DNA of 48,531 nucleotides, counting the filler, from Bipalium vagum (Eukaryota): assembly GCA_037834085.1 (NCBI GenBank). It is 3 parts of 3 records of this genome, joined end to end, with 100 filler letters (N's around TTAATTAATTAA, not from the genome) between each part and the next. Parts side by side here need not be neighbours in the genome. Positions count along the whole stretch, not along the records: positions 16,778 to 32,375 come from JBBMKC010157241.1; 2 more parts are not named here. The stretch is one strand, 5' to 3'. The translations under genes were made by a program, and so were the position numbers. Shown piece by piece: positions 16,778 through 32,375 of the stretch (positions are counted from its first letter, which is position 1; every line of letters starts with the position of its first letter). Under the pieces are notes generated by a model. That model was not told the DNA's origin, searched no databases, and saw nothing but the letters and a program-made list of their open reading frames with translations.

Positions 16778-18749
16778 TATTGAGAACTGAAGACATGGTT
16801 TTGATTAAGAATGAATGTTATTTGAAATAAAAGTTCTCGTACATCTCCTGATTGTTATATTTGACTACTCTGTAGGGTATTTGTACTATTTTACTGATTT
16901 TACTTCTATAACCACAAGCTACTTCGTGAGACTGGTAAAATGCTTGAGAAAGTCCAAAATTGATCAACTTGTAAACATAACCGAACAATATGAAAGCATA
17001 AAATATCAGACCACAGTAACCTTAAGCTTTAAATTATGACAGAAAAGATTTTATTTAATTATAAAAAATTATTATTGGTTATTAGAATTCAGATTAAATC
17101 AATAAATGATTCGTTCAGGCATCATAATCTAAATTAAACGCTAATCTTTTTAGATGATGTAATAAATGAAACAGATCAACATATTATGGAAATGTATCTT
17201 AATGGGTAAGCATAGTGAATATTCTGCAGCAAATTGGTCAGTATCGTTTATTGATCAAACATTAAGAATAGTTTGGAAACAGTGCAGTCTCTTTCTGTAT
17301 TAGACATTGTTTAATTCACTCGCAAGGTTACTGTAAGACCTCACTATAATAAAAGATTAGCCGCATTTGATTATTACTAAAATGTAACACATAAAATGAA
17401 CACAAGCAATTTAGTCATCGAATAAAATAATTCCATATTTGTGTTCTCTAACTCCTCTGACCCGTTAAACATTAAAAAAAATATTGAAGAAAAATGAAAG
17501 TAAAAATGAAAATAACAAAAGTTTGATATCTTACACTTGTATTCTCAGACTTGGATGTCCTTGCATTTTGCCATCTTCACTTTTGCAATCGCATTCACTT
17601 AATTACAATCTTCAATATCTAACTACTTCTTAAAAATCTGTAAACCCTCTCTGCCGTTTTTGTTTCTTCTTCATTAGTCTCAATCCTTTGGGAATAATAG
17701 TTTCCGATCTCTAGTATTTGGCTTCCAGTAGCTTTCCTATTAGTGGATCCTAGTCTTTTGGGTACACAAAGATATTCTTAATTTCTTCTCTCATGCCATC
17801 TCCTTCATTCATTATATACAGGATGCGTCGTATAATCGCGGACTATTTTGAATCAGTCAACCTAATCAAACAGAAAAACAGCTCAGCCTATTTGTTGATA
17901 TTTTTGTGTTGATTGGAATTTGATATATAATTGATTAAAAATTTTTTTTATAGATTTCATATTTTAGATGAACATAAACGACAAAAGGCAAAAAAATCAT
18001 ACAAGCATTCATGCGACAATTGTCAATAAATGTTTACACTTCACAGCAAATAAATCTTCACACACTCAAATTAACTCTTTGTGCATCAAAGACATTTTCC
18101 AAAAAATCTTTAATTACCACTTCACCACAACAAAAATATCATAAAATCACTTTTTCTACAAAGAATTTTTCACAATACTCCTTTTCTCATTATAAACCCT
18201 CATTAAGTATATCTTCTCTTTTCTCCGCTTTCATATTGATTACTGGGAAAACTTGGAAAGTTAAACTTTGAATAGTTCTCTTTTTTGAATCTTTTATCAT
18301 TCAATTTTCCTCCGCCCCTTTCCCCATAATTTAATGGATCACTGTGAGCTCTAATTACCAGCTTAGCTCTCACCCCACAACTGGACTGAATAATTAATTT
18401 ATTCTCAACCATCCTATCAATCAGGTATTTTTCTCATTGTAAATTCTCAAACAGGTAACAAAATAAATATTATAAAATCAATAATTTTAATAATAAAAAG
18501 GTGTTTATGAAAAACACCTGTTTCGAGGAAAATGTCCATTTAGAACCGTCTTCTACGATGATTTCCTGTACTCTTCTTTTGGTTTTTGTATTTTTCTTTT
18601 TGGCCGTCTCCCCGCTCATCTTTTTTTCATATTCCGTGAAAGTTCATGAAATCAGAGAGGAAGCAGAGAAGTTGTGAGACGAAGAGTGAGAGAAAGAGTA
18701 AAGTGCAATGGAGAAAAATATAATTTGGATTACAAGCATAGTAAGCGCC

Positions 18750-19800
18750 GTTTCATTCTTTGGATTCCATGAGTCAAGATAACGAACAACGATTGTATCC
18801 AGTGACGTTTGATATCTAGTTGCTTTGTTTAAATGAAAGGCTAGGCAGTTTAGCCTTAGTTCTACGCGGGTTATAGTATAGTGATATGTTCTTTGCTCTT
18901 GCTTTCATTAAGAAGTGCCATTGTTTATCATTTAATTCTGTGTTTAGTTATTTTATTGGATTCTATACTTAATCGAAAAAGATTTGACTATCTGGAACCG
19001 TTTTTGATTTCCAACTATTGAAGTAATTAAACGAGATAGCATCTTTAAGTATTTTCGTGGCATCATACATTTCTTGCTCTCCAATAATATAACTTTTTGA
19101 ATCAAATTCTTTTAATTGGAATTTTTGACGGGTGCAGATCTGAGTCACATAAATTGAAATAATTAAGAATTTCATCAATTATTTTATCAATATTTTGTCG
19201 TGGTCGGCTAAATGGGACTCCTAGATATAAATAAGTACTATTAATATATTCGTCAACCTTTGGGATAATTTCATCATATACTTTTAAATGTAACATTTTT
19301 CTATTTGATTTGAGTAATATCCACACTTTGATAGGTCTGAATTTTAAATGAATTTTATCAGTTAGTTCGATGAGGTTATCTATAATTTGCTTAGAGCTGA
19401 CCCAAAAGACAAGTAGATAGTCAGTGTAGGCAATGATGCTGAATCCAGTGTTATTAACAGCCAGTGAGACTTCTTTAGAAGGAACTGTTCGAAGAAGTGG
19501 CTTTAATGTTACACAGAAAAGGGCAACAGAAAGAGAACACCCTTGTCGAACATCTCAAACGATATTTTGGAAAACCTTGCAAAAAAGAGAAAGAGAAAAG
19601 GACAACAGCAAAAATTTGAAGCGATAAGACACTGTACTGTTTCCAAACAATTCTTAATGTTTGATCAATAAATCAAGATTGCGTCTTTTAAAGTTTTTTT
19701 TGGTTCTGTTGATCTTTCTTTCTTCTCGGATTGGTATGGGTGAATATCTTCGTTATAACAGAAGGTTTCCCATCAATTATGAGTGCAAATATAATACTAG
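18750..19800 (-). mobile_element. Non-LTR retrotransposon (LINE) reverse transcriptase fragment, degenerate
   Basis: Minus strand gives DVRQGCSLSVALFCVTLKPLL (cf. GVRQGCPLSP.LF), IIAYTDY (decayed YADD) and YLYLGVPF (cf. KYLG). Confidence 0.8.
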
Positions 19801-19835
19801 AGTGTGCTTCTAAATCATTGGTTTAATTGATAATA

Positions 19836-21152
19836 TCTGTTGTGTCTAAAAGGTAATGAGATTAAATAAGCTCCGTTTGAATAAAAGAAGATTTATGAGG
19901 TTTTATTTAAACAACATAGTCTCCATTTGAACGAATCACATCTTTACAATATGCATACAACCGCTCTAATTCATGAACAAAGCATTCCCGCAGGATGGTA
20001 CGGAATAAACGCAACGACTCAGGGTGAAGTTCTTCGGATAATGATTTGATTCTATTCTTTTTCAGATCCTTCTTCAGATTAAGAAACAGTCATCAATCTG
20101 CCAAATTAAAGTCTGGACTATATGCTGATTGACGATTAAGAATAATTTGACGTGGTACAAAAAACTGTTTTGTTGTAACTACTGAATGAGGACGTGCATT
20201 GTCATTCTGCCACTAGAGTTGATTCAGTCGTGTTGGTGATGATTGAAGAGTTCTCCATTTCTCTCTAGCTCGATGAACAAAAGGGACTTATCCTTTTGCT
20301 GTCACTGTTTGACCAGGGCGGAAGGCTTCTATGTTGAACTTCTTATCAACTGTGAATGAAAGTCGAAACAATATCTTTTATTCGTCAACTGGGCAAAATT
20401 TCGCGTGACCGCGCTGCGTTTGGAGCCAGCTATGTTTTATTGTCCTGTTTGGTGTGGAATACATCAAAAAAGACCCAATCTTTGTCCTTATTATCCAGTA
20501 ATGTAGAAAATCATCCATTGACTTTTGATCCTGAATCTGAACAATTTCTGTGGCAAACTTCAGTCTATTCTTTTTATTGATGTCTGACAAGATGTGTGTA
20601 ATCTATACTGAACAAATGTCCTTCAACCCCCATATTTTGGTAACGATATTTCTTATTGTATCCTTATTGCAACCAACTAAATCGGCCAGCATTCTAAGAG
20701 ATTGTCTCGGGTTTTCAATCATAGAATGTTTGACAAATGTCACGTTCTTCTCTGTGGTTGCAGTTGAGGGTCCCCAAATTCTGTGTGAGGCACACAAGGA
20801 TGTTCGACTTCCATCAATGAAATCTTTCCACCAACGGAATATGGTTGCAAGTGAGAAAACGTTACTTAAATGTATATCCAACAGCTGCTGGTAAACATCA
20901 GTTGCAGGCCGTCCACGCTTCATCTCCAAATAGATATAAGAGCGATAGTGTTCTTTATTTAAATCCATTTCAATAAATCGTTGCATTAATTAATAAAATA
21001 GTATATGAATTCAAGTGTGTATCTGTGAAAGCTCTTCTTTAATTGATCAATTTTTTGATGAAATTGTGATTGGTCAAAAGCAATATCATTATTATGATTA
21101 TAGATTTCCAAGAAAGATATATTTAATCCCATTAATTTTTAGACACACCAAA
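19836..21152 (-). mobile_element. Full-length (~1.3 kb) but inactivated mariner transposon with both TIRs and TA target duplication
   Basis: Imperfect TIRs tgttgtgtctaaaaggtaatgagattaaata (19838) and tatttaatcccattaatttttagacacacca (to 21150); TA at 19834-35 and 21153-54. HTH region MDLNKEHYRSYIYLEMKRG..ATIFRWWKDF, then WQNDNARPHS and QSAYSPDFN motifs; internal stops and frameshifts. Confidence 0.9.
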
Positions 21153-21671
21153 TATTTGAATAGATAAGCCTCTTTTTTTAGTTTCAAAGGTTTGTTTGAG
21201 TAATATAACAGTCAGTATGAGAAACAGTAACAACGACAACACAACGTCGGACATGTCCATTATATGTAATTAAATTAAAGAATCTTAATGGTGACTTAAC
21301 GATCAGAAAGCGACAAAAAGTTTGCACAACCTAATATGAGGATCTTATTATATAATAATAAAAGTTCATGATTGGTTACATTGATATTTATAGAATCTTA
21401 TAAATGAGCCATCAATGACAGTTTTTTCGTTTATTTTGTATAAATTTTTCAAAAGATATTCTTTTAATTTTTCAGTGCATTTTTCCTATTTCTCCTATGG
21501 ATAATTAATATAATTTCATTGACTGACAAGGGAGTACCGTTTTACTACCGTAAAATCTAATGAATATTAATTATAGTGTAAAGATATAGGGGAAAGAAAT
21601 CGATTAAGTGTATTTATATTTTATTAAGTCAAAGTATTTCTAATAATCTTAAATTCGTTACAAAAGCTTAT

Positions 21672-21699
21672 AACATCTGTCCCTTCCCACAATCTCTAA
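21672..21699 (+). promoter_or_regulatory. Conserved upstream element: E-box CATCTG plus TTCCCAC (GTGGGAA, Su(H)/RBPJ-type)
   Basis: AACATCTGTCCCTTCCCACAATCTCTAA is identical at 31202-31229 in the paralog promoter, ~270-280 nt upstream of each ATG. Function is inferred. Confidence 0.45.
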
Positions 21700-21898
21700 A
21701 AGCTCTTTGAGTGTCGCAAGCGTTTCAGAGCGACAAAAACTTGACAGAACTTTGATGAGGGGTCTCTGAAATGCACTCATTTGAGGAAGTTTCTTACTTA
21801 CCTTTATACCTTTGAAATCTGGAGTCTCCGAGAATTCTTTTCACTATACTTTTATTTATTAATGGGTTTCAAGTTTCCCCATTTTTCTCCTAATTCTT

Positions 21899-21907
21899 TA
21901 TATAAAA
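21899..21907 (+). promoter_or_regulatory. Putative TATA box of Tyr-rich repeat gene 1
   Basis: TATATAAAA ~25 nt upstream of an Inr-like TCATTC (21924-21929) and ~40-45 nt upstream of the ATG|GTAAGA first exon. Confidence 0.55.
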
Positions 21908-21944
21908 GGAAGCTTCCATATTCTCATTCCAAACAACCACCTCA

Positions 21945-23920
21945 ATGGTAAGAGTTCATTTATTTAATCCCATTTTATTTTATTAATATTTTATTAAGAT
22001 ATGTATAAAAACCCTCTTTAGGAATGCAAGAGGTCCACCTTAATATATTTTATTAATATAATAATATTATAAACATAATATTTAACCATATTTAATATAA
22101 ATAAAGTTTGGAGTCTCAGTTTAAAGTGATCGAAATGTTTAAGAAATAAAATTATTTATTATTTTTTTATCTTGAGTAAAATCAGATTTCAGAAGTCTTC
22201 AACCTTTCAGTGTTACCATTTATCCTTTTATTCATAATCGGAGATGAACAATGTGAAGACCATGTTATTCTTTTCTTTAATTCTTACCTTCCATAAAATT
22301 GTTATTTACCTTTTATCTTCTTAAGTTAGAAAATCTTAGTTCCGCAGTTTAGGATTTCTTTATTTTTGTTTTTTCAGATATGTTCGATGATGTAACAAAG
22401 TAAGAATCATTTCACAGAACGGAATATTTTTGAAGAAATACATTTTATGTAATTTATATATTCAGATATTCTTATCCGGTTTAACAATATTGCTTACGCT
22501 ACTACTCAGTGGAGCACTGTCCCGTTATGTAGAACAATATTCGGGTAGTCCATTTTATAAAGGAGACACTTCAACATATTATAATTACGAAACACACGGT
22601 CCCCATGAAAGATATTTGAGTCGTGGACCCTTCTATTATAATTACGAAACCAACCGTCCTCACGAAAGATATTCAAGTCGTGGACCGTACTATTACAATT
22701 ACGAAACAAATCGTCCTCATGAAAGATATTCAAGTCGAGGGCCATACTACTACAATTACGAAACACATGGTCCTCATGAAAGATATTCAAGTCGTGGACC
22801 GTACTATTATAATTACGAAACAAATCGTCCTCACGAAAGATATTCAAGTCGTGGGTCGTACTACAATTACGAAACACATGGTCCTCATGAAAGGTATTTA
22901 AGTCGTGGACCGTATTACTACAATTACGAAACAAATCGTCCTCATGAAAGATATTCAAGTCGTGGACCGTACTACTACAATTATGAAACACACGGTCCTC
23001 ATGAAAGATATTCAAGTCGTGGACCGTACTACTACAATTACGAAACAAATCGTCCTCATGAAAGATATTTAAGTCGTAAACCGTACTATTATAATTACGA
23101 AACAAATCGTCCTCATGAAAGATATTCAAGTCGAGGGCCATACTACTACAATTACGAAACACATGGTCCTCATGAAAGATATTCAAGTCGTGGACCGTAC
23201 TACTACAATTACGAAACAAATCGTCCTCATGAAAGATATTTAAGTCGTAAACCGTACTATTATAATTACGAAACAAATCGTCCTCATGAAAGATATTCAA
23301 GTCGAGGGCCATACTACTACAATTACGAAACACACGGTCCTCATGAAAGATATTCAAGTCGTGGACCGTACTATTACAATTACGAAACCAATCGTCCTCA
23401 TGAAAGATATTCAAGTCGTGGACCGTACTATTATAATTACGAAACAAGCCATCCTCACGAAAAATATTCAAGTCGTGGACCGTACTACTACAATTACGAA
23501 ACAAATCGTCCTCACGAAAGATATTCAAGTCGTGGGTCGTACTACAATTACGAAACCAACCGTCCTCACGAAAGATATCCAAGTCGTGGACCGTACTATT
23601 ATAATTACGAAACAAGCCATCCTCACGAAAAATATTCAAGTCGTGGACCGTACTACTACAATTACGAAACAAATCGTCCTCACGAAAGATATTCAAGTCG
23701 TGGGTCGTACTACAATTACGAAACCAACCGTCCTCACGAAAGATATCCAAGTCGTGGACCGTACTATTATAATTACGAAACAAGCCATCCTCATGAAAGA
23801 TATTCAAGTCGTGGGTCGTACTATTACAATCACGAAACAAGCCGTCCTTATGGAGTTGATTCTGCCTATACCCCATTTCATGGCAATCGGTATGGATCAT
23901 TTAATACAAAACACTATTGA
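21945..23920 (+). CDS. Secreted Tyr/Arg/His-rich tandem-repeat protein 1 (~485 aa), function unknown
   Basis: Exon 1 = ATG (21945-21947) followed by GTAAGA; exon 2 = 22466-23920 after ttcag, in phase. Gives signal peptide MIFLSGLTILLTLLLSGALS, then 22 units of YYNYET(NR/HG/SH)PHERYSSRGPY and a unique tail. All indels preserve frame; aataaa at ~23964. Confidence 0.85.
22577..23821 (+). repeat. Coding minisatellite, 22 units (19 x 57 nt, 3 x 54 nt)
   Basis: Counted from the ORF translation: 49 + 415 + 32 = 496 aa. Confidence 0.95.
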
Positions 23921-24904
23921 GAACGTAAACAATATCAACATGTTTTCGATATATGTTTTTTGAAATAAAAACTGGCGTACATTTACTTATTATGATAATT
24001 ATAATGTCCTGTAATAATATTATTGTTGTGTAATATTTTAATAGTAAAGCAAGCTTCGAGCTAAAGTAATTAACATCCTGGCATGAGATCTACAATACAT
24101 ATATACAATGTTATTAACTCCAAATTATATGAATTATAATCATCCAATCATCTGTCCCAAAACACGTCATCGTCAACCAGAATTTCAATATATTAAAAAT
24201 TATTTTTATCGTTGTTTTTCTAAGGACGATATTATGAAATATTGATGGAATAAAAGAAAAAATTTTAATACCAAGAATTTCAGTCTTTCTGTCGAATAAC
24301 TCAGGTAAAACAAAAAGGAAATAATGATTTTAGATATTGTGGTAAATATGAAAAAATGAAGATGTTATGGAAATGTATTTTGGTTGAGGGAGACTTCATA
24401 TAGTTGATGATATAAAACCAGAAGAAGATGTAACTGTACAAAACAATTTCTTTCTGATAATCATTTTCAAATAAAATTTTAAAATGAGGTTCAAATTTTA
24501 GTGTAAAATTTTGGAACTTCAAATCCCATTAATAACTTAGTAGTGATTGATAAAAAATAATGATAGAGAGATATTTGACTGGTAACTAGAAAAAATAAAG
24601 ATAATTCAGATGATGTAGAACAAAAGATTTGAGCCAAGAAAACTATTTTAATTAACTAATACCTTGACCGGTAAAGTCAATGTTTGGATTACACACGCCA
24701 ACAACAAAAATTTAAAATTTCTTAATTGTATGTATTTATTAATTAATGTTAATTAAATGTAATTATGACTAAACGAAGTACTCTGATTTCGAAAATGTTA
24801 ACGAAAATGTTGCATGACACCAGGCTTTTAAAACTCCCGTCAATCAAATGCGCACCATAGAGTCAATCCCAACCACCTTGCTCCACACTCTTTACACTAA
24901 ATTA

Positions 24905-26024
24905 CTGTAAAATTCCGAGTATAAGCTGCAGCTAATACGTACATACAGGAAACATTTTTGAATTGCAGCTAATATGATGTGCAGCTTAAACAAACAAAAA
25001 AACAATTCAAATCGAAGATCAGATTATTTATTTCAATTTTAAACATCACACTCCTCAAAACCATCACACTTTTCATTGTCAATAAAAGTGAAAATTTCTA
25101 GTAATTCTACAATGTTTGGATCAGACTCGTTCACATTCATTTCATTTTCTCCAATTTCAAGAACATCGTCGTTGAAAGGTTAAAATCTTCCCAAGAGGAA
25201 ACAATACATTCGAAAATAGTATTCCAGTCAGCTGCTTTCATATTTCCGGACTTAGTGTGTTTGATGTTTTCATAATCTTTAATGATTCAATCATTCCACT
25301 TCTTGCGCATTTTGACTTGAACGAACGGTTAACAGTAAGAAATAATGGCTGCACCTTTGATGTCAATCCGGTAGGTATGAAAGCTACTTTGGATTCGAAC
25401 ACAAATATTCTTGCGTTTCATGAAATTATCAGTCCATTAAAAGCTCGCGACAAATTCTTCAATCTTCATCTCTTTGGCAATTACTTGTGCCTGTAAACGA
25501 ATTCGAACAACTGACACTTGAAATTCTCGTTCAGGTTGAATTAGGATCCATTCGTGTAATTTCGTTTCCAATTCCGGATATCTAGCGTTACCACCACGCA
25601 AAGATCTTCGATTTGGATTCATTGCTTTGATAACAGACTCTTTAACAGTTTCATTAATATCATATCGTCTTGCAACCTCCCGTATGTTTCCTAACTGACG
25701 AGTTAATTCAATAATTTCTTTTTCTTTGCTGAACTAAAAGATCTTCGTTGTTTCTTTTGTTTTTGTTCAGAATCGTTATCCATTTTAATCAAAGATGAAT
25801 TTTAATCAAATGAACAATGTAAACAATATAAACGATTAAAACAAAATGGTTATTGTCACGGTGAAATTTGTTTTTAATGATAGGTTGTTGATTTTAAAAT
25901 CACATGTTTTCAACGTAAATGGTGCAGCTAATACGTGATGCAGTTTATACGAATAAAAAATACATTTTTATAAAATGTCATCTGCAGCTAATACGCGCTG
26001 CAGCTTATACTCGGGATTTTACAG
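24905..26024 (-). mobile_element. Internally deleted pogo/Tigger-family DNA transposon
   Basis: TIRs ctgtaaaattccgagtataagctgcagc and gctgcagcttatactcgggattttacag, each flanked by TA. CENP-B-type HTH remnant RSLRGGNARYPELETKLHEWI..RIRLQAQVIAKEMKIEEFVAS; acidic tail remnant. Confidence 0.88.
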
Positions 26025-26029
26025 TATCT

Positions 26030-27450
26030 AAAAAAAGAGGATATATACCACTCTCAACCACATCTGTTAAAAATTTTCTATTAGGGGATCCATAAAACTT
26101 CACATGAACCAATCTTTCACTAAATACGCATTCGGAGATAATTGCAAAGGACTCAGAAGACAAAAGCTTATCGAGCAACACAAAGCCTTCCAAGAATTGA
26201 AAGAAACTCTTACAAAACCCAAATTTTGACGTTCCCGGATATTAAAAGATCATTTATTTTAGACACGGATGCCGTATTGTCTCAGAGAGACGATAACGGT
26301 AAAGAGAGAGTAATTTCATACGAATCACAAACAATAAAAAGCCAAGAAAAAGGATATTGCATTACGAGAAAGGAATTATTGGCAATCTATTATTTTTGCA
26401 ATCATTTTAAGCATTATCTGTACGGGTTTCTAGTGTTAGTGGATCATAAAGCAATCGAATTCATGTTTAAAACAAAAGAGACCCAATAACATCACAATCT
26501 CAGATGTGGATAAATCTATGCAGCCTGGATATGGAGCTTAAATACAAGAAAGAAATAGAGCATATGAATTACAGATATATAATCAAAATGAATTGTGATA
26601 CATGCTCCCAGTGTATGTTTATCCATGGAGAACCTAAGAATGAAAAAAGAAAGAGAAGAATCATAAATTCTGACCATGAATGGCAGTATAAATAGAGCTT
26701 TAATATGTGACCGACACGAAAAAGTTATCATTTGAGTTTCGCTGAGAGACCTGACGACGAAAATTATACATAGTGGCTATAGTGAATCATCACAGCAGTT
26801 AAATTTAATTAACGCTGATAATGAAACAGGATGAATTAACAAATAGAAAAGTAAGGCCGAAAAATGGATCTGTAAATATGGTGCACCGAAAGAAATTCAC
26901 GGAGATTGCGGATAGTTTTTTGAATCTAAAGTTTTTAAGACGTTGGCAGTACAAAGTAAAGCGAAACTTGTTGTTTATCGAACCCGTATCGAACGTGATA
27001 ATAGAACGACTATGAATTCTACTATGGGTGAGACAAAAACGAGAAATTGAGTAAACGCAATACTTCAACAGATGTTAGGATATAGTCCAGCTAAAGTCTT
27101 ATTTGAAAGGAAAACTTGCAACGATGCTTGGGTCAGTAACAAGCAATCAAGAGAACTAAAAAAACAAAACCTACAAGAAAGACCGGACCCAGTGATAACA
27201 AGAAGAATGTTCGAACATGGAGATAAAGTACTAGTAAAGGTCAAAGGAAGAACTTAGGATAAAAATAGCTACGAAGGACCATACACTATTAAGAGAAAAG
27301 TTCATGACAAAAGATATCTCAAAGATAAAGAAGGAAGAAAATTTGAAAGGAATGTGGAAAAAAATAAAAATTCTTGAAAAGGGGAATGTGAGCCTTTAAG
27401 TAAATTTTAAAATTTTAAAATTTTTACAAAGTGCCTAATATTATATTTAA
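26030..27450 (+). mobile_element. Ty3/Gypsy LTR retrotransposon pol remnant (RT-RNaseH, integrase) with PPT and start of 3' LTR
   Basis: LTFPDIKRSFILDTDA..VLSQ..ERVISYES..YCITRKELLAIYYFCNHFKHYLYG..DHKA. GPY motif (EGPYTI) at ~27273. Polypurine tract gaaaaggggaa followed by TGTGAG at 27387. Confidence 0.85.
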
Positions 27451-28329
27451 TGTTAAATTTAATTTTTATATAATAATAATAATAAAATAATCATAATTAT
27501 TATTATTATGAAATCTTTTTTTTTAAATTATGGTTTAAAATTGTACATGTTTATTAAATATTGAAAATTTATTTGAATATTATTATGTTTTAAAACATTA
27601 ATAAATTTGTAATGATGTCTGATTTTGTCGATATTGCCGCTAAACACAAATATTTGAAAATTCGAATAATTATAAAAGCCAACATTTTTAACTTTTTAGA
27701 ATCAAATATGTTATTTCTGTTATGTATTTGTATGTAGTGTGATATTTTTTCGAAAAACTGTCAAAAAAAATTAATTTCGTTTTCAGTAAAATTTAAATAA
27801 ACATGAAACCATAATTTTTTTTGTTAAATTCAATTAACAATCGTATCAGATAGTGCATCTTAAAATCATTTATAAAAAAACGATCAAAACTTATAATATC
27901 TTGAAATGTTCGTGTTCTTGATCATAACATGTAAAATATTGATCTGATCAAAATGGAATTAGTATCTTTGAAAAGAGCATAAAACATTGGTTATAGTTTT
28001 TCTTTTTATGTTATATCTAAAGGCCTTTTGTTTTCTTTTAAAGTTACGAAACCAATTTATACTCTATGTTAGAAAACCGGGTAGTAAGCTAAAATGTTTA
28101 ATATCTTTCAAATTAGATGCTATAACAGTAATATTTTCCAATCAAAATAATATAAATATTAAGGATTGTTTTATCATTATAAAAATAAATTAAAATATAA
28201 TTTTTACTAAATTGAACTATAATTAGAAAATTAAGAAAATTTTGCATTATAAATATATGATTATATTATGCTGGGTATATATACAAAAGTTTTTTTCTAT
28301 CAAAAACAAAGTATTTTTCAGAAACAACG

Positions 28330-29110
28330 GTAAAATAGTTTAAATCCAAAAGATATTCTCCATTATTTTCAATGACTCTAACAGATTTAACGCAAAGAAT
28401 AGATGCTATTAACATAAAAGTCTATAGATGCTGAGTGTAATTCAAAGAACTATGACTCTCATATTTTGACTTCCTAGATGCTTTTGAATGTTGTCTTGTC
28501 CAAAGAATGTTGAATAGATTGTAATCCGATGTGTCTACACTATAAGACAAATGTAGTCAAGGAGAAATTGTCTTTTGGAATTTTTATTGATTGACTATAT
28601 AAAGTTTGGCTCACTCAATTGACTTCTTCTGCATTTACCGTCTGATCCTTATCCAGTACCTCGAAATATATCAAACCTTTATTCTACAATGCACAAAGCA
28701 TGAGCTGGAATCCATGAATGTTTGGGTTTGGAGTGGGTTTTGTTTGTTCACCGACATCTAACCACTGCTATTTTTTTTATTATTTTATGATCCTTTTTTC
28801 ATTTGACTTTACAATTCACTCAAGAAATCAGTTGTCCTTTGCTTATTGAAGAAAAATTCGGAATTAGATTTTCGCGATATCTACTTAATCAACTTGATGG
28901 TTTTTTTTATACTAAGTTGTCCACAACATAAGGAGACGATGGTAGTTTTCATTTTAAAGACTTTCATCACCATCTTGAATACGCTGTGACCATCGCTGAT
29001 ATTGGCGTAATACTTGAACACTATCTCCGAATACTTCACACAAATTAAGATATGATTCATTTACCGTTTAACATTGTTCGAAACACACTATTTTTTTCAT
29101 CTAACATTTT
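28330..29110 (-). mobile_element. Degenerate mariner
   Basis: Minus strand gives EVFGDSVQVLRQYQRWSQRIQDGDESL (HTH) and PNPNIHG (cf. Mos1 KPNIHG-type linker). Confidence 0.6.
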
Positions 29111-30594
29111 ATAAAGATTTAATAATTCAAAATTAAATCAATTTTAGGTAAAAAACATATCAAATTACTTGATTTAAACAACTTTATCATATAAAAAAAT
29201 TTGTAAAAATTAAAACTTGACTTTACTATTTACAGTTTTTCTTTGATACTTGTTCTATTACAGGGTTATGCAGAAATTTATATAAAAATATTCAAAAAAT
29301 ATAGTGGAAATGTACACTAAATGAATTCTTGTTTCGCCAAGGCTGTTTATATGAACCGCTTCATGTTGCGAAAATAATCAATTAAATCGATATTATCATG
29401 CATTAATATTCGTATTTTAATTTGTAGTTTTATTTTGTGCATTCGTTGTTCTCGGTATTTTATCATTCGTATTTTTGTTTGTAGTTTTATCGTTGGTCGT
29501 AGTTGTTGGGTCCTTGCTTTTTCGAAGATATTGTTTCTTTGGTTGTTGTTGTTGTTCATGCCAATTTAATGATGAATTTATCTTCATTTTTATCTTTCAA
29601 ATCGTTATTGAGACTTTTTGTAACATTTAAATTTTCGAATTTTCAGAAAATTTTATTTTTAATTAATGAAAGTATTTTGTGAAATTGAAGGAAAATGTGA
29701 AAACAATGAATCTACGGTCCACCAGACAACGGAACATTGCTAACCATTCAGAATACATTTGAATACTGTGGAACTAGTTGTTCCTAAAGAAGATTGAAAC
29801 GTATTTCGCGGCTGCGTCTGATGACTGACCTTCTTTAATGTGTATATTTATATTCATTCACTTAACCAAGGTCCCTCGTCTAATCGAATCCGAATCACTT
29901 CCGTAACGTGCTGGCATTATCTATTTAAACGTACAGGTGTCTGACCATGGAATTATTACAATTTTCTTCAATTCCCGGAACATGATTCTCCTTGATATAT
30001 AACTTTAATGATAGAAAACTTAATAATCATATTTTAGTTCTTTCCTCCTGAACTCTAAATAAACTAAAACTGATTTTTGCTTTATTAAAGTTGTCAAGTG
30101 AAGTATTTCAGAAAAATCATTTCTCTCCAAAATGGAAACATGTCCAAAAGCGCTCCATATTCGCTGATAAATAAATGTCCGTCTTTGTTAGGCTTTCTTA
30201 ACTTTATCGCATATTCACCGTTGTATATATTGGTTAATGACCCACTTTGCAGATTGGTCTACAATTTGCAGTCTTACCTACATTCATGAATTACCTACAA
30301 ATTTCATACTACACAATCTGATAATATATATGCTTATGGAGTCAGATATATTAGGTTGTTAATATATCTTTAGCAACTTATTTTAGATGACAAGGAATTG
30401 CAATCGTCAGAAGATGGAAAATCGTCTGGAAAACTGCTTCAACCAACAGTCCATAGGACTATCTCAATAAGTAGAAATTTAAAAATATTAGGTTCAGGTC
30501 AAGGTAACGTCGCTTTTCTATATACAAACTTTTAAGCAAAAATATATTAAGATTTCGATAAATATTTGATTTATTGAAATATTGATTTATAATA

Positions 30595-32130
30595 TTAGAA
30601 CAGGTAAGCCTCTTTATGATATTTCCAAATGTTTGTTTGAGTAATTTAACACTCAGTATGACAGTATAACAGTAACAACGGCAACTAAATTTCGGACATG
30701 TCCATTATATGAAATTTAATTAAACAGTCTTAATGGCGATGACTTAAGGAATTTTGACTTGTGATATAAAAAAGCGACAACACTCGTCGTCAACCGATTG
30801 TGATTATTATCTTGTAAAATAATAAAGGTTCTTGATTGATTTTATACAAAATATTGATATTTTTGGAGCCAGGATGATTAGGCGCCTTATAAATGTTTCA
30901 TCATTTTCTGATTTTTCGCTTATTTTGTTTAAATTATCAGAAAGTTTTCAAAAGGGATATCATTAAAGAAAAACTTAACATTACTAAGCGTTGAAAATAA
31001 AGATATTCTTTCAAATTTTCTCTTTATATTTCTTATTTGTCTTATGAATAATTAATGCAATTTTGTTGACTGACAAGAGGGAACCGATTCACCTCCGTAC
31101 GACATAGTGAACATTGATTAGGTGTAAATAAAGGGGAAAAGAAATCGATTAAATGTCTTTTATAATTTTGTAATAATCTTCAACTCGCTGCAAAAACTTA
31201 AAACATCTGTCCCTTCCCACAATCTCTAAGACATTTATGGGTGTCGTTAGTTGTTTTAAAACCTTGAAATACGATTAAGAATTGACTGAACAATGAAGAA
31301 GGGTTTCTGAAATACACTTTTACAGTTTCTGACTTACCTTCAAATCTCTGAGATCTGGAGTCTTCGAGAATTCTTTTCACTATACTTTTGCTTATTAATG
31401 GATTTCAAGTTTCCCCCCGTTTTTCTCGTAATTATTTATTTAAGAAGAAGCTTCCCAATTCCCATTTCAAACAACCACCTCAATGGTAAGAGTTCATTTA
31501 TTTAATTCCGTTTTATATTATTTATATCTAAAACTTTCATTTTATTTATATTTTCATAAAGCGAAATATAAAAAACTTACGTACAAGGTTTACTTAAATA
31601 TATTATATATAATTATAATAATATATTAATATCACGAATATAATATTTAATACTATTTGATATAAATAAAATTTGCAGTCTCAGTTTAAAGCGGTCGAAA
31701 TATTGAAAGAATAAAATTATTTATTTTATTTATATTATTTATTTTATTCTTTTTTAAATCTTTACGGTTTTCAGAGCACCTCAATCTTTCAGAGTGCCCT
31801 TTTTATCCCTTTATTCATAATCGATGAACAACGTGTAGGGCATTTTATCTCATTCTTTAATGTTTATCTCAAATGAAATCTCTTTTCTTTGAACCGAAAC
31901 CCTTAACGTATAAGATTTCTTTTCTTCATTACGGAAACAATGAAAACATTATTTGATATCTTTCCGAAAGTTAAAATCAGATTTTTCTCATGAAGTAACA
32001 AAGTAAAAATGATTATAAAGAACGAAGTGTTTTTCAAAGAAATACCTTTTATATCCTGTTTTATCTTAGATATCACCACCGGGTTTAACCGTGTTGCTTA
32101 CGCTACTGTTCAGTGGAGCACTGTCCTTCG
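30595..32130 (+). repeat. Diverged tandem duplication of ~21155-22525 (promoter, exon 1, intron, signal-peptide exon)
   Basis: Colinear shared blocks: taagcctct, tttgtttgagtaat, cggacatgtccattatatg, ttgactgacaag, aacatctgtcccttcccacaatctctaa, gagaattcttttcactatacttt, caaacaaccacctcaatggtaagagttcatttatttaat, ttgcttacgctact..cagtggagcactgtcc. Confidence 0.92.
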
Positions 32131-32375
32131 GAACAGCCAGTCCTTATGGAGACTATTCGACAGACAGACCCAGCTATTACAATTATGGAACAGACAGACC
32201 CAACTATTACAATTATGAAACAGACAGACCCAACTATTACAATTATGGAACAGACAGACCCAACTATGACAATTATGAAACAGACAGGCCTAACTATTAC
32301 AATTATGGAACAGACAGACCCAACTATTACAATTATGGAACAGACAGACCCAACTATTACAATTATGGAACAGAC
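31483..32375 (+). CDS. Secreted Tyr/Asn-rich tandem-repeat protein 2 (paralog; 3' end lost in assembly gap)
   Basis: Exon 1 = ATG (31483-31485) then GTAAGA; exon 2 from 32070 after cttag. MISPPGLTVLLTLLFSGALS-FGTASPYGDY, then at least 7 units of (S/G/E)TDRP(S/N)Y(Y/D)NY (30 nt) from 32157 up to the gap. Confidence 0.82.

Follow-up and report, generated by a model that had tools for sequence, protein, structure and literature searches.

Positions 16778-32375 of the window, a stretch of 48,531 nucleotides (nt), filler included, from assembly GCA_037834085.1, come from contig JBBMKC010157241.1 and carry a group of paralogous genes for tyrosine-rich repeat proteins. The analysis covered this contig, which has a GC content of 31%. 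On it lie one complete gene (gene 1), a second that is cut by the right contig end (gene 2) and the last codon and 3' flank of a third (gene 0). Together they probably belong to a tandem array of at least three genes, from a fast-evolving family restricted to its lineage. To judge from sequence, these products form a new orphan, lineage-specific family of a well-known kind, the secreted Tyr-rich repeat structural or adhesive proteins. We favour the view, with a probability of roughly 0.55, that they are precursors of a Tyr-cross-linked or condensed (coacervating) extracellular material. Gene structure, paralogy, constraint, composition and the lack of relatives were read directly, and the proposed role draws on composition and analogy; secretion, transcription, splicing, condensation, cross-linking, tissue and material are what we infer from them.

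Gene structure and family membership

Genes 1 and 2 share a common plan, with two exons, a TATA-type promoter, a very short leader ending in ATG, a phase-0 intron of 0.5-0.6 kb and a large exon whose low-complexity repeats are rich in Tyr, Arg and Asn and delimited by Pro. Exon 1 is needed as the source of the initiator codon because in neither gene does the open reading frame (ORF) of exon 2 contain an in-frame ATG upstream of the signal peptide. The features of gene 1 are listed below, with the evidence for each.

21150-21925, + strand: conserved upstream region and promoter (homology to 30590-31465)
21901-21908, + strand: TATA box TATAAAAG (direct reading)
21924-21929, + strand: initiator-like TCATTC, about 25 nt downstream of the TATA box, at the putative transcription start
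21926-21947, + strand: predicted exon 1, a leader of about 19 nt plus the ATG (21945-21947), with GTAAGAG directly after the ATG
21948-22465, + strand: intron 1, 518 nt, GT...AG, phase 0, 23% GC (splice predicted from sequence)
22466-23920, + strand: exon 2, in frame with the ATG, supplying 484 of the 485 codons (ORF, tandem repeat array, list of units, substitution pattern [pN/pS, see below])
22466-22522, + strand: exon 2 part of the predicted 20-residue signal peptide (M)IFLSGLTILLTLLLSGALS (start of exon 2)
22925-23270, + strand: recently duplicated three-unit (171-nt) block within the repeat array
23918-23920, + strand: stop codon TGA (ORF)
23964-23969, + strand: polyadenylation signal AATAAA, 44 nt past the stop (direct reading; conserved in the gene 0 flank)

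The intron of gene 1 ends in ...TATATTCAG, and exon 2 lies within a long ORF (22430-23920, +) coding for the Tyr-rich repeats. Its signal peptide is followed by a unique N-terminal stretch, then by some 22 units of 19 residues each and, at the C-terminus, by 30 unique residues. Tandem Repeats Finder (TRF) detected the array as 22.4 copies of a 57-nt unit between 22583 and 23852 (86% matches, score 1805). At a lag of 171 nt, identity within the duplicated block rises to 97-99%, compared with 0.69 across the array, and this duplication is, judged from these identities, a signature of recent, ongoing unequal crossing-over.

For gene 2 we obtained the following model, in which the ATG, placed elsewhere by an earlier reading of the DNA made from the sequence alone (the sequence-only reading), is moved to 31483-31485.

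30590-31482, + strand: conserved upstream region with promoter and leader (homology to gene 1 upstream)
31437-31444, + strand: TATA-type box TATTTAAG (direct reading)
31483-31485, + strand: ATG, closing exon 1 (reading; identity with gene 1)
31486-32069, + strand: intron 1, 584 nt, GT...AG (reading; homology to the gene 1 intron)
32070-32375, + strand: exon 2, cut at the contig end (ORF, TRF, composition, codon variation)

Exon 2 of gene 2 encodes the signal peptide (M)ISPPGLTVLLTLLFSGALS, then FGTASPYGDYS and at least seven units of TDRPNYYNYG/E. The ORF that codes for these Tyr-rich repeats is cut and opens at 32091 (+); from 32160 up to the contig end at 32375, TRF reports a 30-nt unit in 7.2 copies, with 94% matches and a score of 390.

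The two genes are related well beyond their coding parts. Their homology begins some 790 nt before the ATG, near 21150 for gene 1 and near 30590 for gene 2, and continues through leader, intron and signal exon at 75-88% identity with insertions and deletions; upstream region, intron and signal exon align at 83%. A segment of 25 nt spanning the ATG and the donor site is identical (21930-21954 and 31468-31492), where no match would be expected by chance, and a 33-nt stretch of the signal-peptide exon is common to both genes with two positions free. The TATA box, the ATG/GTAAGAG donor, the AG acceptors and AATAAA are conserved between paralogues, and at the level of sequence this conservation supports the gene models. 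The sequence-only reading had described signal peptides and promoters as near-identical; they are indeed similar, although the signal peptides agree at only 15 of 20 residues and the proximal promoters at 86-88% of positions. Its proposal of tandem Tyr-rich repeat genes with signal peptides is borne out by the TRF arrays, the shared gene structure and the constraint described below.

We considered whether exon 1 might be a spliced-leader gene and rejected this in favour of cis-splicing, exon 1 being situated about 0.5 kb upstream of each paralogue within the duplicated unit. A conserved intron segment of about 22 nt (22378-22399 in gene 1, 31981-32002 in gene 2) is flanked by AG and by GTAAGA or GTAAAA. 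Its use as a coding micro-exon was rejected, since in each of the two genes its inclusion would either introduce a stop or shift the frame, and it may represent either a non-coding alternative exon or merely shared ancestry.

The contig opens with TAT TGA GAAC followed by an AATAAA region, and over about 450 nt this opening can be aligned to gene 1, from its stop codon into its 3' flank. A third paralogue therefore lies just upstream, with its repeat body beyond the contig edge, and the parts of it that fall on the contig are as follows.

16778-16783, + strand: last codon TAT (Tyr) and stop TGA of gene 0 (TATTGAGAAC aligned with the ...CAC TAT TGA GAAC end of gene 1)
16784-17300, + strand: 3' flank of gene 0, homologous to that of gene 1 (alignment; blocks conserved to about 450 nt past the stop)
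16826-16831, + strand: AATAAA in the gene 0 flank, shared with the gene 1 flank

Within these flanks a direct repeat (16815-16862 against 23953-24000) is 77% identical. On the left, the contig breaks right at the final codon and stop of gene 0; on the right, it breaks inside the repeats of gene 2. Since both breaks coincide with repeat arrays of the family, the assembly probably collapses or breaks there, and the repeat number of gene 1 may accordingly be uncertain. To judge from its two ends, the array of Tyr-repeat genes very likely continues beyond both.

Further members are indicated by one public run (X1), which contains 75% of the sampled words of the locus. Its contigs cover intron and upstream DNA without differences, and X1 is therefore a DNA run. 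Over 21100-22640 it yields 116 contig pieces that are at least 80% alike, 62 of them below 90%, and a summed word depth of about 100-240, compared with 15-28 for the exact contigs. At one loose end the last signal-peptide codon is followed by a different body, FGSSTGRPN.... The diverged pieces, the depth and the loose end together point to several further members, in which this 5' module precedes other repeats. The locus gives a view of how such a family evolves, with promoter, leader, intron and signal peptide kept and the repeat module remodelled and expanded by unequal crossing-over. As a separate observation, a run from another organism (X2) contains a single low-depth contig of 87 nt that matches the 57-nt repeat of gene 1 at 22577-22633.

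Coding constraint, composition and relatives of the repeat proteins

Several frames of the repeat are open, on either strand, and the coding frame was examined by a constraint test on the 19 full 57-nt units of gene 1. In the Tyr frame the mean minor-allele fraction among these units is 0.047 at the first codon position and 0.042 at the second, compared with 0.139 at the third. The pairwise ratio of non-synonymous to synonymous differences per site (pN/pS) is 0.18 in this frame; the five alternatives give 2.0 and 0.74 on the forward strand and 1.4, 0.33 and 0.85 on the reverse. Gene 2 points in the same direction (pS 0.104, pN 0.043), with only seven units available. As pN/pS is lowest in the Tyr frame and variation falls at third positions, the Tyr-rich frame is the selected coding frame. 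This constraint argues against a non-coding satellite, and we hold it highly likely that the Tyr-repeat genes are real.

The mature protein 1 would comprise 465 residues (58.5 kDa) with an isoelectric point (pI) of 9.15. It is composed of 24.7% Tyr, 12.5% Arg, 11.0% Ser, 9.9% Glu, 9.7% Pro, 8.2% Asn, 7.3% His, 6.7% Gly, 5.8% Thr and 1.3% Lys, corresponding to 115 Tyr, 58 Arg and 34 His residues; Cys, Met, Trp and Ile are absent, and there are four Leu, two Val and one Ala. Its net charge of +18.7 at pH 7 triples to +57 at pH 5 because of the 34 His residues. The protein 2 fragment, representing the first 83 mature residues, contains 26.5% Tyr, 15.7% Asn, 12% Asp, 10.8% Thr, 9.6% Pro, 8.4% Arg and 3.6% Ser and no Cys, with a pI of 4.36 and a net charge of -5.2 at pH 7. 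Per residue, the charges at this pH amount to about +0.04 for protein 1 and -0.06 for protein 2, and both are balanced polyampholytes. The N-x-S/T sequon is absent from protein 1 and from the protein 2 fragment, and the products would be unglycosylated at Asn. These counts agree with the composition given by the sequence-only reading, which had noted the lack of Cys and of sequons and the scarcity of aliphatic residues. Both signal peptides have a hydrophobic core of 12 residues and A-L-S at positions -3 to -1, and protein 1 has no C-terminal hydrophobic tail; secretion through a cleavable signal peptide would be expected from these features.

The unit of protein 1, NYETNRPHERYSSRGPYYY, is 19 residues long and present in about 22 copies that vary as NYET(N/H/S)(R/G/H)PHE(R/K)Y(S/L/P)SR(G/K)(P/S)YYY, three units having 18 residues. 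The 10-residue unit of protein 2 reads TDRP(N/S)Y(Y/D)NY(G/E). When rotated, the repeats of both genes read YYNYET(N/D)RP(H/N), so that the claim that they are unrelated was mistaken: the core is identical at 21 of 30 nt, its Arg codon differing between gene 1 (CGT) and gene 2 (AGA). The 19-residue unit corresponds to this decapeptide core plus a nine-residue extension of the HERYSSRGP or ERYSSRGPY type. Every unit contains YNY, YY or YYY, and YNY is present in every unit of both proteins. A single-sequence AlphaFold2 (AF2) model of protein 1 has a mean predicted local distance difference test score (pLDDT) of 45.8 and a predicted template modelling score (pTM) of 0.33. In it the signal peptide is helical, and each repeat unit shows one strand of three residues and one of five, with a strict period of 19 residues and pLDDT of 50-57.

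Searches for relatives gave no family. A Pfam-A scan (E up to 0.1) found none for protein 1, no TES domain in either protein and no match to the arthropod families PF02756 or PF02757 (GYR/YLP motif) or PF00379 (R&R cuticular); a match of protein 2 alone to Extensin_1 (PF02095) scored 14.3 bits (E 0.035), where the cut-off is 105 bits, and was dismissed as noise. Sequence searches of NCBIfam and PDB returned no match. Word-index searches of 5.8 billion protein clusters gave nothing for gene 1 exon 2 (484 residues), for its first 119 residues or for the gene 2 fragment, for which no candidate shared three 5-residue words. An exhaustive phmmer search of 1.84 billion representatives produced 12 matches at E<=1e-3 (best 9e-12). 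We rejected these as homologues because none is Tyr-rich and none carries the core motif; they are unrelated periodic low-complexity proteins (SPERYKSRSPSFRN, GPRDFNRRDDRPREGG and MVTEGPELR-like). Two metagenome scans gave pattern matches and no confirmed locus, and four repeat motif strings were absent from the literature searched. Look-alikes from the ESM Atlas scored 0.75-0.78 with low recognition, below the meaningful level, and were not used. The family is absent from every annotated or widely sampled proteome in the collections searched, which also lack the window's own protein and in which close relatives from unannotated sister genomes would likewise be invisible. That neither repeat belongs to a named family, as the sequence-only reading had it, is in keeping with these empty searches of Pfam, NCBIfam, PDB, words, phmmer, metagenomes and literature motifs. 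With regard to the size and taxonomic range of the family, also raised there, the X1 copies make it larger than a pair, and the protein collections searched added no relatives.

Proposed role and competing explanations

On the reading we prefer, the products would serve as precursors of an egg capsule or shell, of a glue or cement, or of a sclerotised lining. Periodic Tyr and Arg residues could act as cation-pi and pi-pi stickers through which the proteins condense by simple coacervation, either inside secretory granules or once they are released. Condensation of protein 1 might be tuned by protonation of His, and dependence on pH or salt is plausible. The YY, YYY and Y-x-Y clusters would then be cross-linked by tyrosinase, forming adducts of the quinone of 3,4-dihydroxyphenylalanine (DOPA) with His or Lys, or alternatively by peroxidase, giving di- or isodityrosine.

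The layout of these proteins is similar to that of adhesives of the mussel foot protein 1 type, which have a signal peptide, dozens of tandem Pro/Tyr repeats on the decapeptide scale, a basic pI and unequal crossing-over. Protein searches found no sequence similarity to the mfp-1 consensus, and in contrast to the mussel protein Arg and His here replace Lys (1.3%) and the repeats are rich in Asn and Glu. In the tick cement glycine-rich protein (GRP), simple coacervation and liquid-to-gel ageing are driven mainly by Arg and aromatic residues placed at regular intervals (PMC11794139). GRP77 is likewise a secreted low-complexity protein with such periodicity (PMC11794139), whereas the present proteins, known from sequence alone, have only 7% Gly and 25% Tyr and no homology to it. 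Plant extensins are also repetitive and secreted and carry Y-x-Y motifs (YNY in every unit here), which in extensins are sites of isodityrosine formation and peroxidase cross-linking (PMC11727788). They differ in their SPPPP blocks, which are absent here; moreover, the genomic context is animal and the profile match was noise.

Several observations weigh against a cross-linked or condensed material. Lys, the commonest nucleophile in quinone tanning, is nearly absent at 1.3%, leaving His and Tyr; no gene for a tyrosinase, a peroxidase or another partner was found on 16778-32375; the low-confidence AF2 model (pLDDT 45.8) speaks neither for disorder nor for order; and the suggested function is drawn from composition alone. 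Provided that they are expressed, the products would rank with the most Tyr-dense of the secreted proteins known so far, with about 25% Tyr and four Tyr in five residues in every repeat. Since the cationic partner is Arg or His rather than Lys, they would also provide a natural test case for Tyr-Arg sticker condensation combined with oxidative curing. The 10- and 19-residue repeats would likewise be a source of short peptide designs for biomimetic adhesives or coatings.

Among more specific explanations, the one that fares best is a sub-case of the preferred reading, in which the proteins are egg-capsule or eggshell precursors. Yolk, vitelline or follicle cells would store them in shell globules and release them around the egg, where tyrosinase would tan them. 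In favour of this explanation, shell genes with massive expression typically come as multi-copy tandem families and have strong TATA promoters. The Cys-free, very Tyr-rich and His-bearing composition also fits both the trematode vitelline class and the substrates of planarian tanning. In planarians, tanning of the capsule requires a yolk-cell tyrosinase whose substrates are still unidentified Tyr-rich proteins (PMC5544531), and if the source is a free-living flatworm, the proteins described here would be candidates for these substrates (PMC5544531). The rhabdite, vitellaria and cocoon settings considered by the sequence-only reading depend on a flatworm source as well. The trematode vitelline protein B family (TES, IPR012615/PF08034; schistosome p14/p48) is likewise secreted, Cys-free and Tyr-rich and forms a small multigene family (PMC11727788). 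Its members contain 12-15% Tyr, compared with 25% here, and their cross-links arise from Tyr by DOPA/quinone or related chemistry (PMC11727788), which for the present proteins is proposed only. Furthermore, no TES domain, other Pfam match or sequence similarity links the two, the resemblance being compositional only, and the present proteins consist almost entirely of perfect tandem repeats in which Lys is nearly absent. We regard an eggshell role as possible and, taken by itself, rather unlikely.

The sequence-only reading had put forward a two-component system in the manner of sandcastle-worm cement. Protein 1 would be its basic, His-titratable partner and protein 2 its acidic one, both secreted together and joined by charge in a complex coacervate. 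In its fuller form, the diverged paralogues would be made in the same gland, condense together on a pH trigger and then be set by enzymatic cross-linking of the YY, YYY and Y-x-Y clusters. The pI values of 9.15 and 4.36 suit this idea, as does the rise in charge of protein 1 from +19 at pH 7 to +57 at pH 5 through its 34 His residues, and promoters that are 86-88% identical near the start make co-regulation plausible. There is also a precedent in the sandcastle-worm proteins Pc-1 to Pc-5, where basic Tyr/His repeat proteins are combined with an acidic partner (PMC12621633). However, Pc-3 is strongly acidic with about 73% (phospho)serine and Pc-1/2 are rich in Gly and Lys (PMC12621633), whereas Ser here amounts to 11% and 3.6% and both proteins are near-neutral polyampholytes that are paralogues of each other. 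With net charges of +18.7 over 465 residues and -5.2 over 83 residues at pH 7, neither is a strongly polycationic or polyanionic partner. About +0.04 and -0.06 per residue is far from the polybasic Pc-1/2/4/5 and the polyphosphoserine Pc-3, and opposite charge is thus a weak basis for pairing. The framing as a pair also lacks support, because the array to which genes 1 and 2 belong has three or more members, several more copies exist in the genome and nothing marks these two as a pair; in addition, protein 2 is represented by its first 83 mature residues only. Both the charge-driven coacervate and its fuller form strike us as doubtful; if true, the condensate would amount to a glue or shell system that is complete in itself, encoded by linked genes and without relatives outside the lineage.

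Somewhat less probable again is an ordered fibre in place of a disordered condensate. Each 19-residue unit would contribute one rung, in which the two short strands YYYNY and ERY are set between turns of Pro/Gly, and the rungs would stack as a beta-solenoid or an amyloid-like Tyr ladder. The AF2 model predicts strands of three and five residues in nearly every unit with the strict 19-residue period, and Pro and Gly occupy the predicted turns. Nevertheless, the repeats reach a pLDDT of only 50-57 and the model a pTM of 0.33 from a single sequence, with four of the five models worse, and the 10-residue unit of protein 2 cannot make the same rung. Least probable of all is that the locus is non-functional, either a satellite-like minisatellite with accidental open frames or a set of decaying pseudogenes. 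In its favour, more than one frame of the repeat is open on either strand, and transposon remnants are scattered across the locus. Against it, third-position variation and a pN/pS of 0.18 occur in the Tyr frame only; the paralogues have kept the ATG, both splice sites, the signal peptide, the stop and AATAAA while their introns and flanks have diverged to about 75-85%; and YYNYET(N/D)RP is kept despite the CGT and AGA Arg codons.

Surrounding DNA

Between the genes, the DNA of 16778-32375 contains only transposon debris. No Rfam families or tRNAs were found in this interval, and a bacterial promoter scan, irrelevant to the locus, showed no enrichment. The remnants are the following.

17247-17293 and 19626-19672: pair of 47-nt inverted repeats, 94% complementary, 2332 nt between the arms
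20381-20986, - strand: Mos1-type mariner transposase remnant (intact ORF of 127 residues at 20603-20986; HTH_48, E 1.3e-7)
25241-25622, - strand: Tc5/pogo-type transposase remnant (HTH_Tnp_Tc5, E 3.9e-5; weak DDE_1 fragment)
26142-26489, + strand: Ty3/gypsy RNase H fragment (RT_RNaseH, E 2.3e-19)

The 47-nt arms resemble terminal inverted repeats bounding a DNA transposon about 2.4 kb long, and the ORFs between them gave no Pfam match. In the mariner remnant the catalytic part is missing or decayed. The Atlas neighbours of its ORF come from Chordata, Arthropoda, Nematoda and Rotifera, which points to an animal source without favouring a phylum, and a lookup of the exact ORF protein gave no match. 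The Ty3/gypsy remnant as a whole spans 26142-27257 (+), with ORF fragments of integrase-like appearance after the RNase H; its + strand is strongly A-rich, with an AT skew of up to 0.29. Further on, before the conserved DNA upstream of gene 2 begins, comes a very AT-rich kilobase (27278-28277), in which no ORF or repeat of note was seen and the GC content falls to 19-21%.

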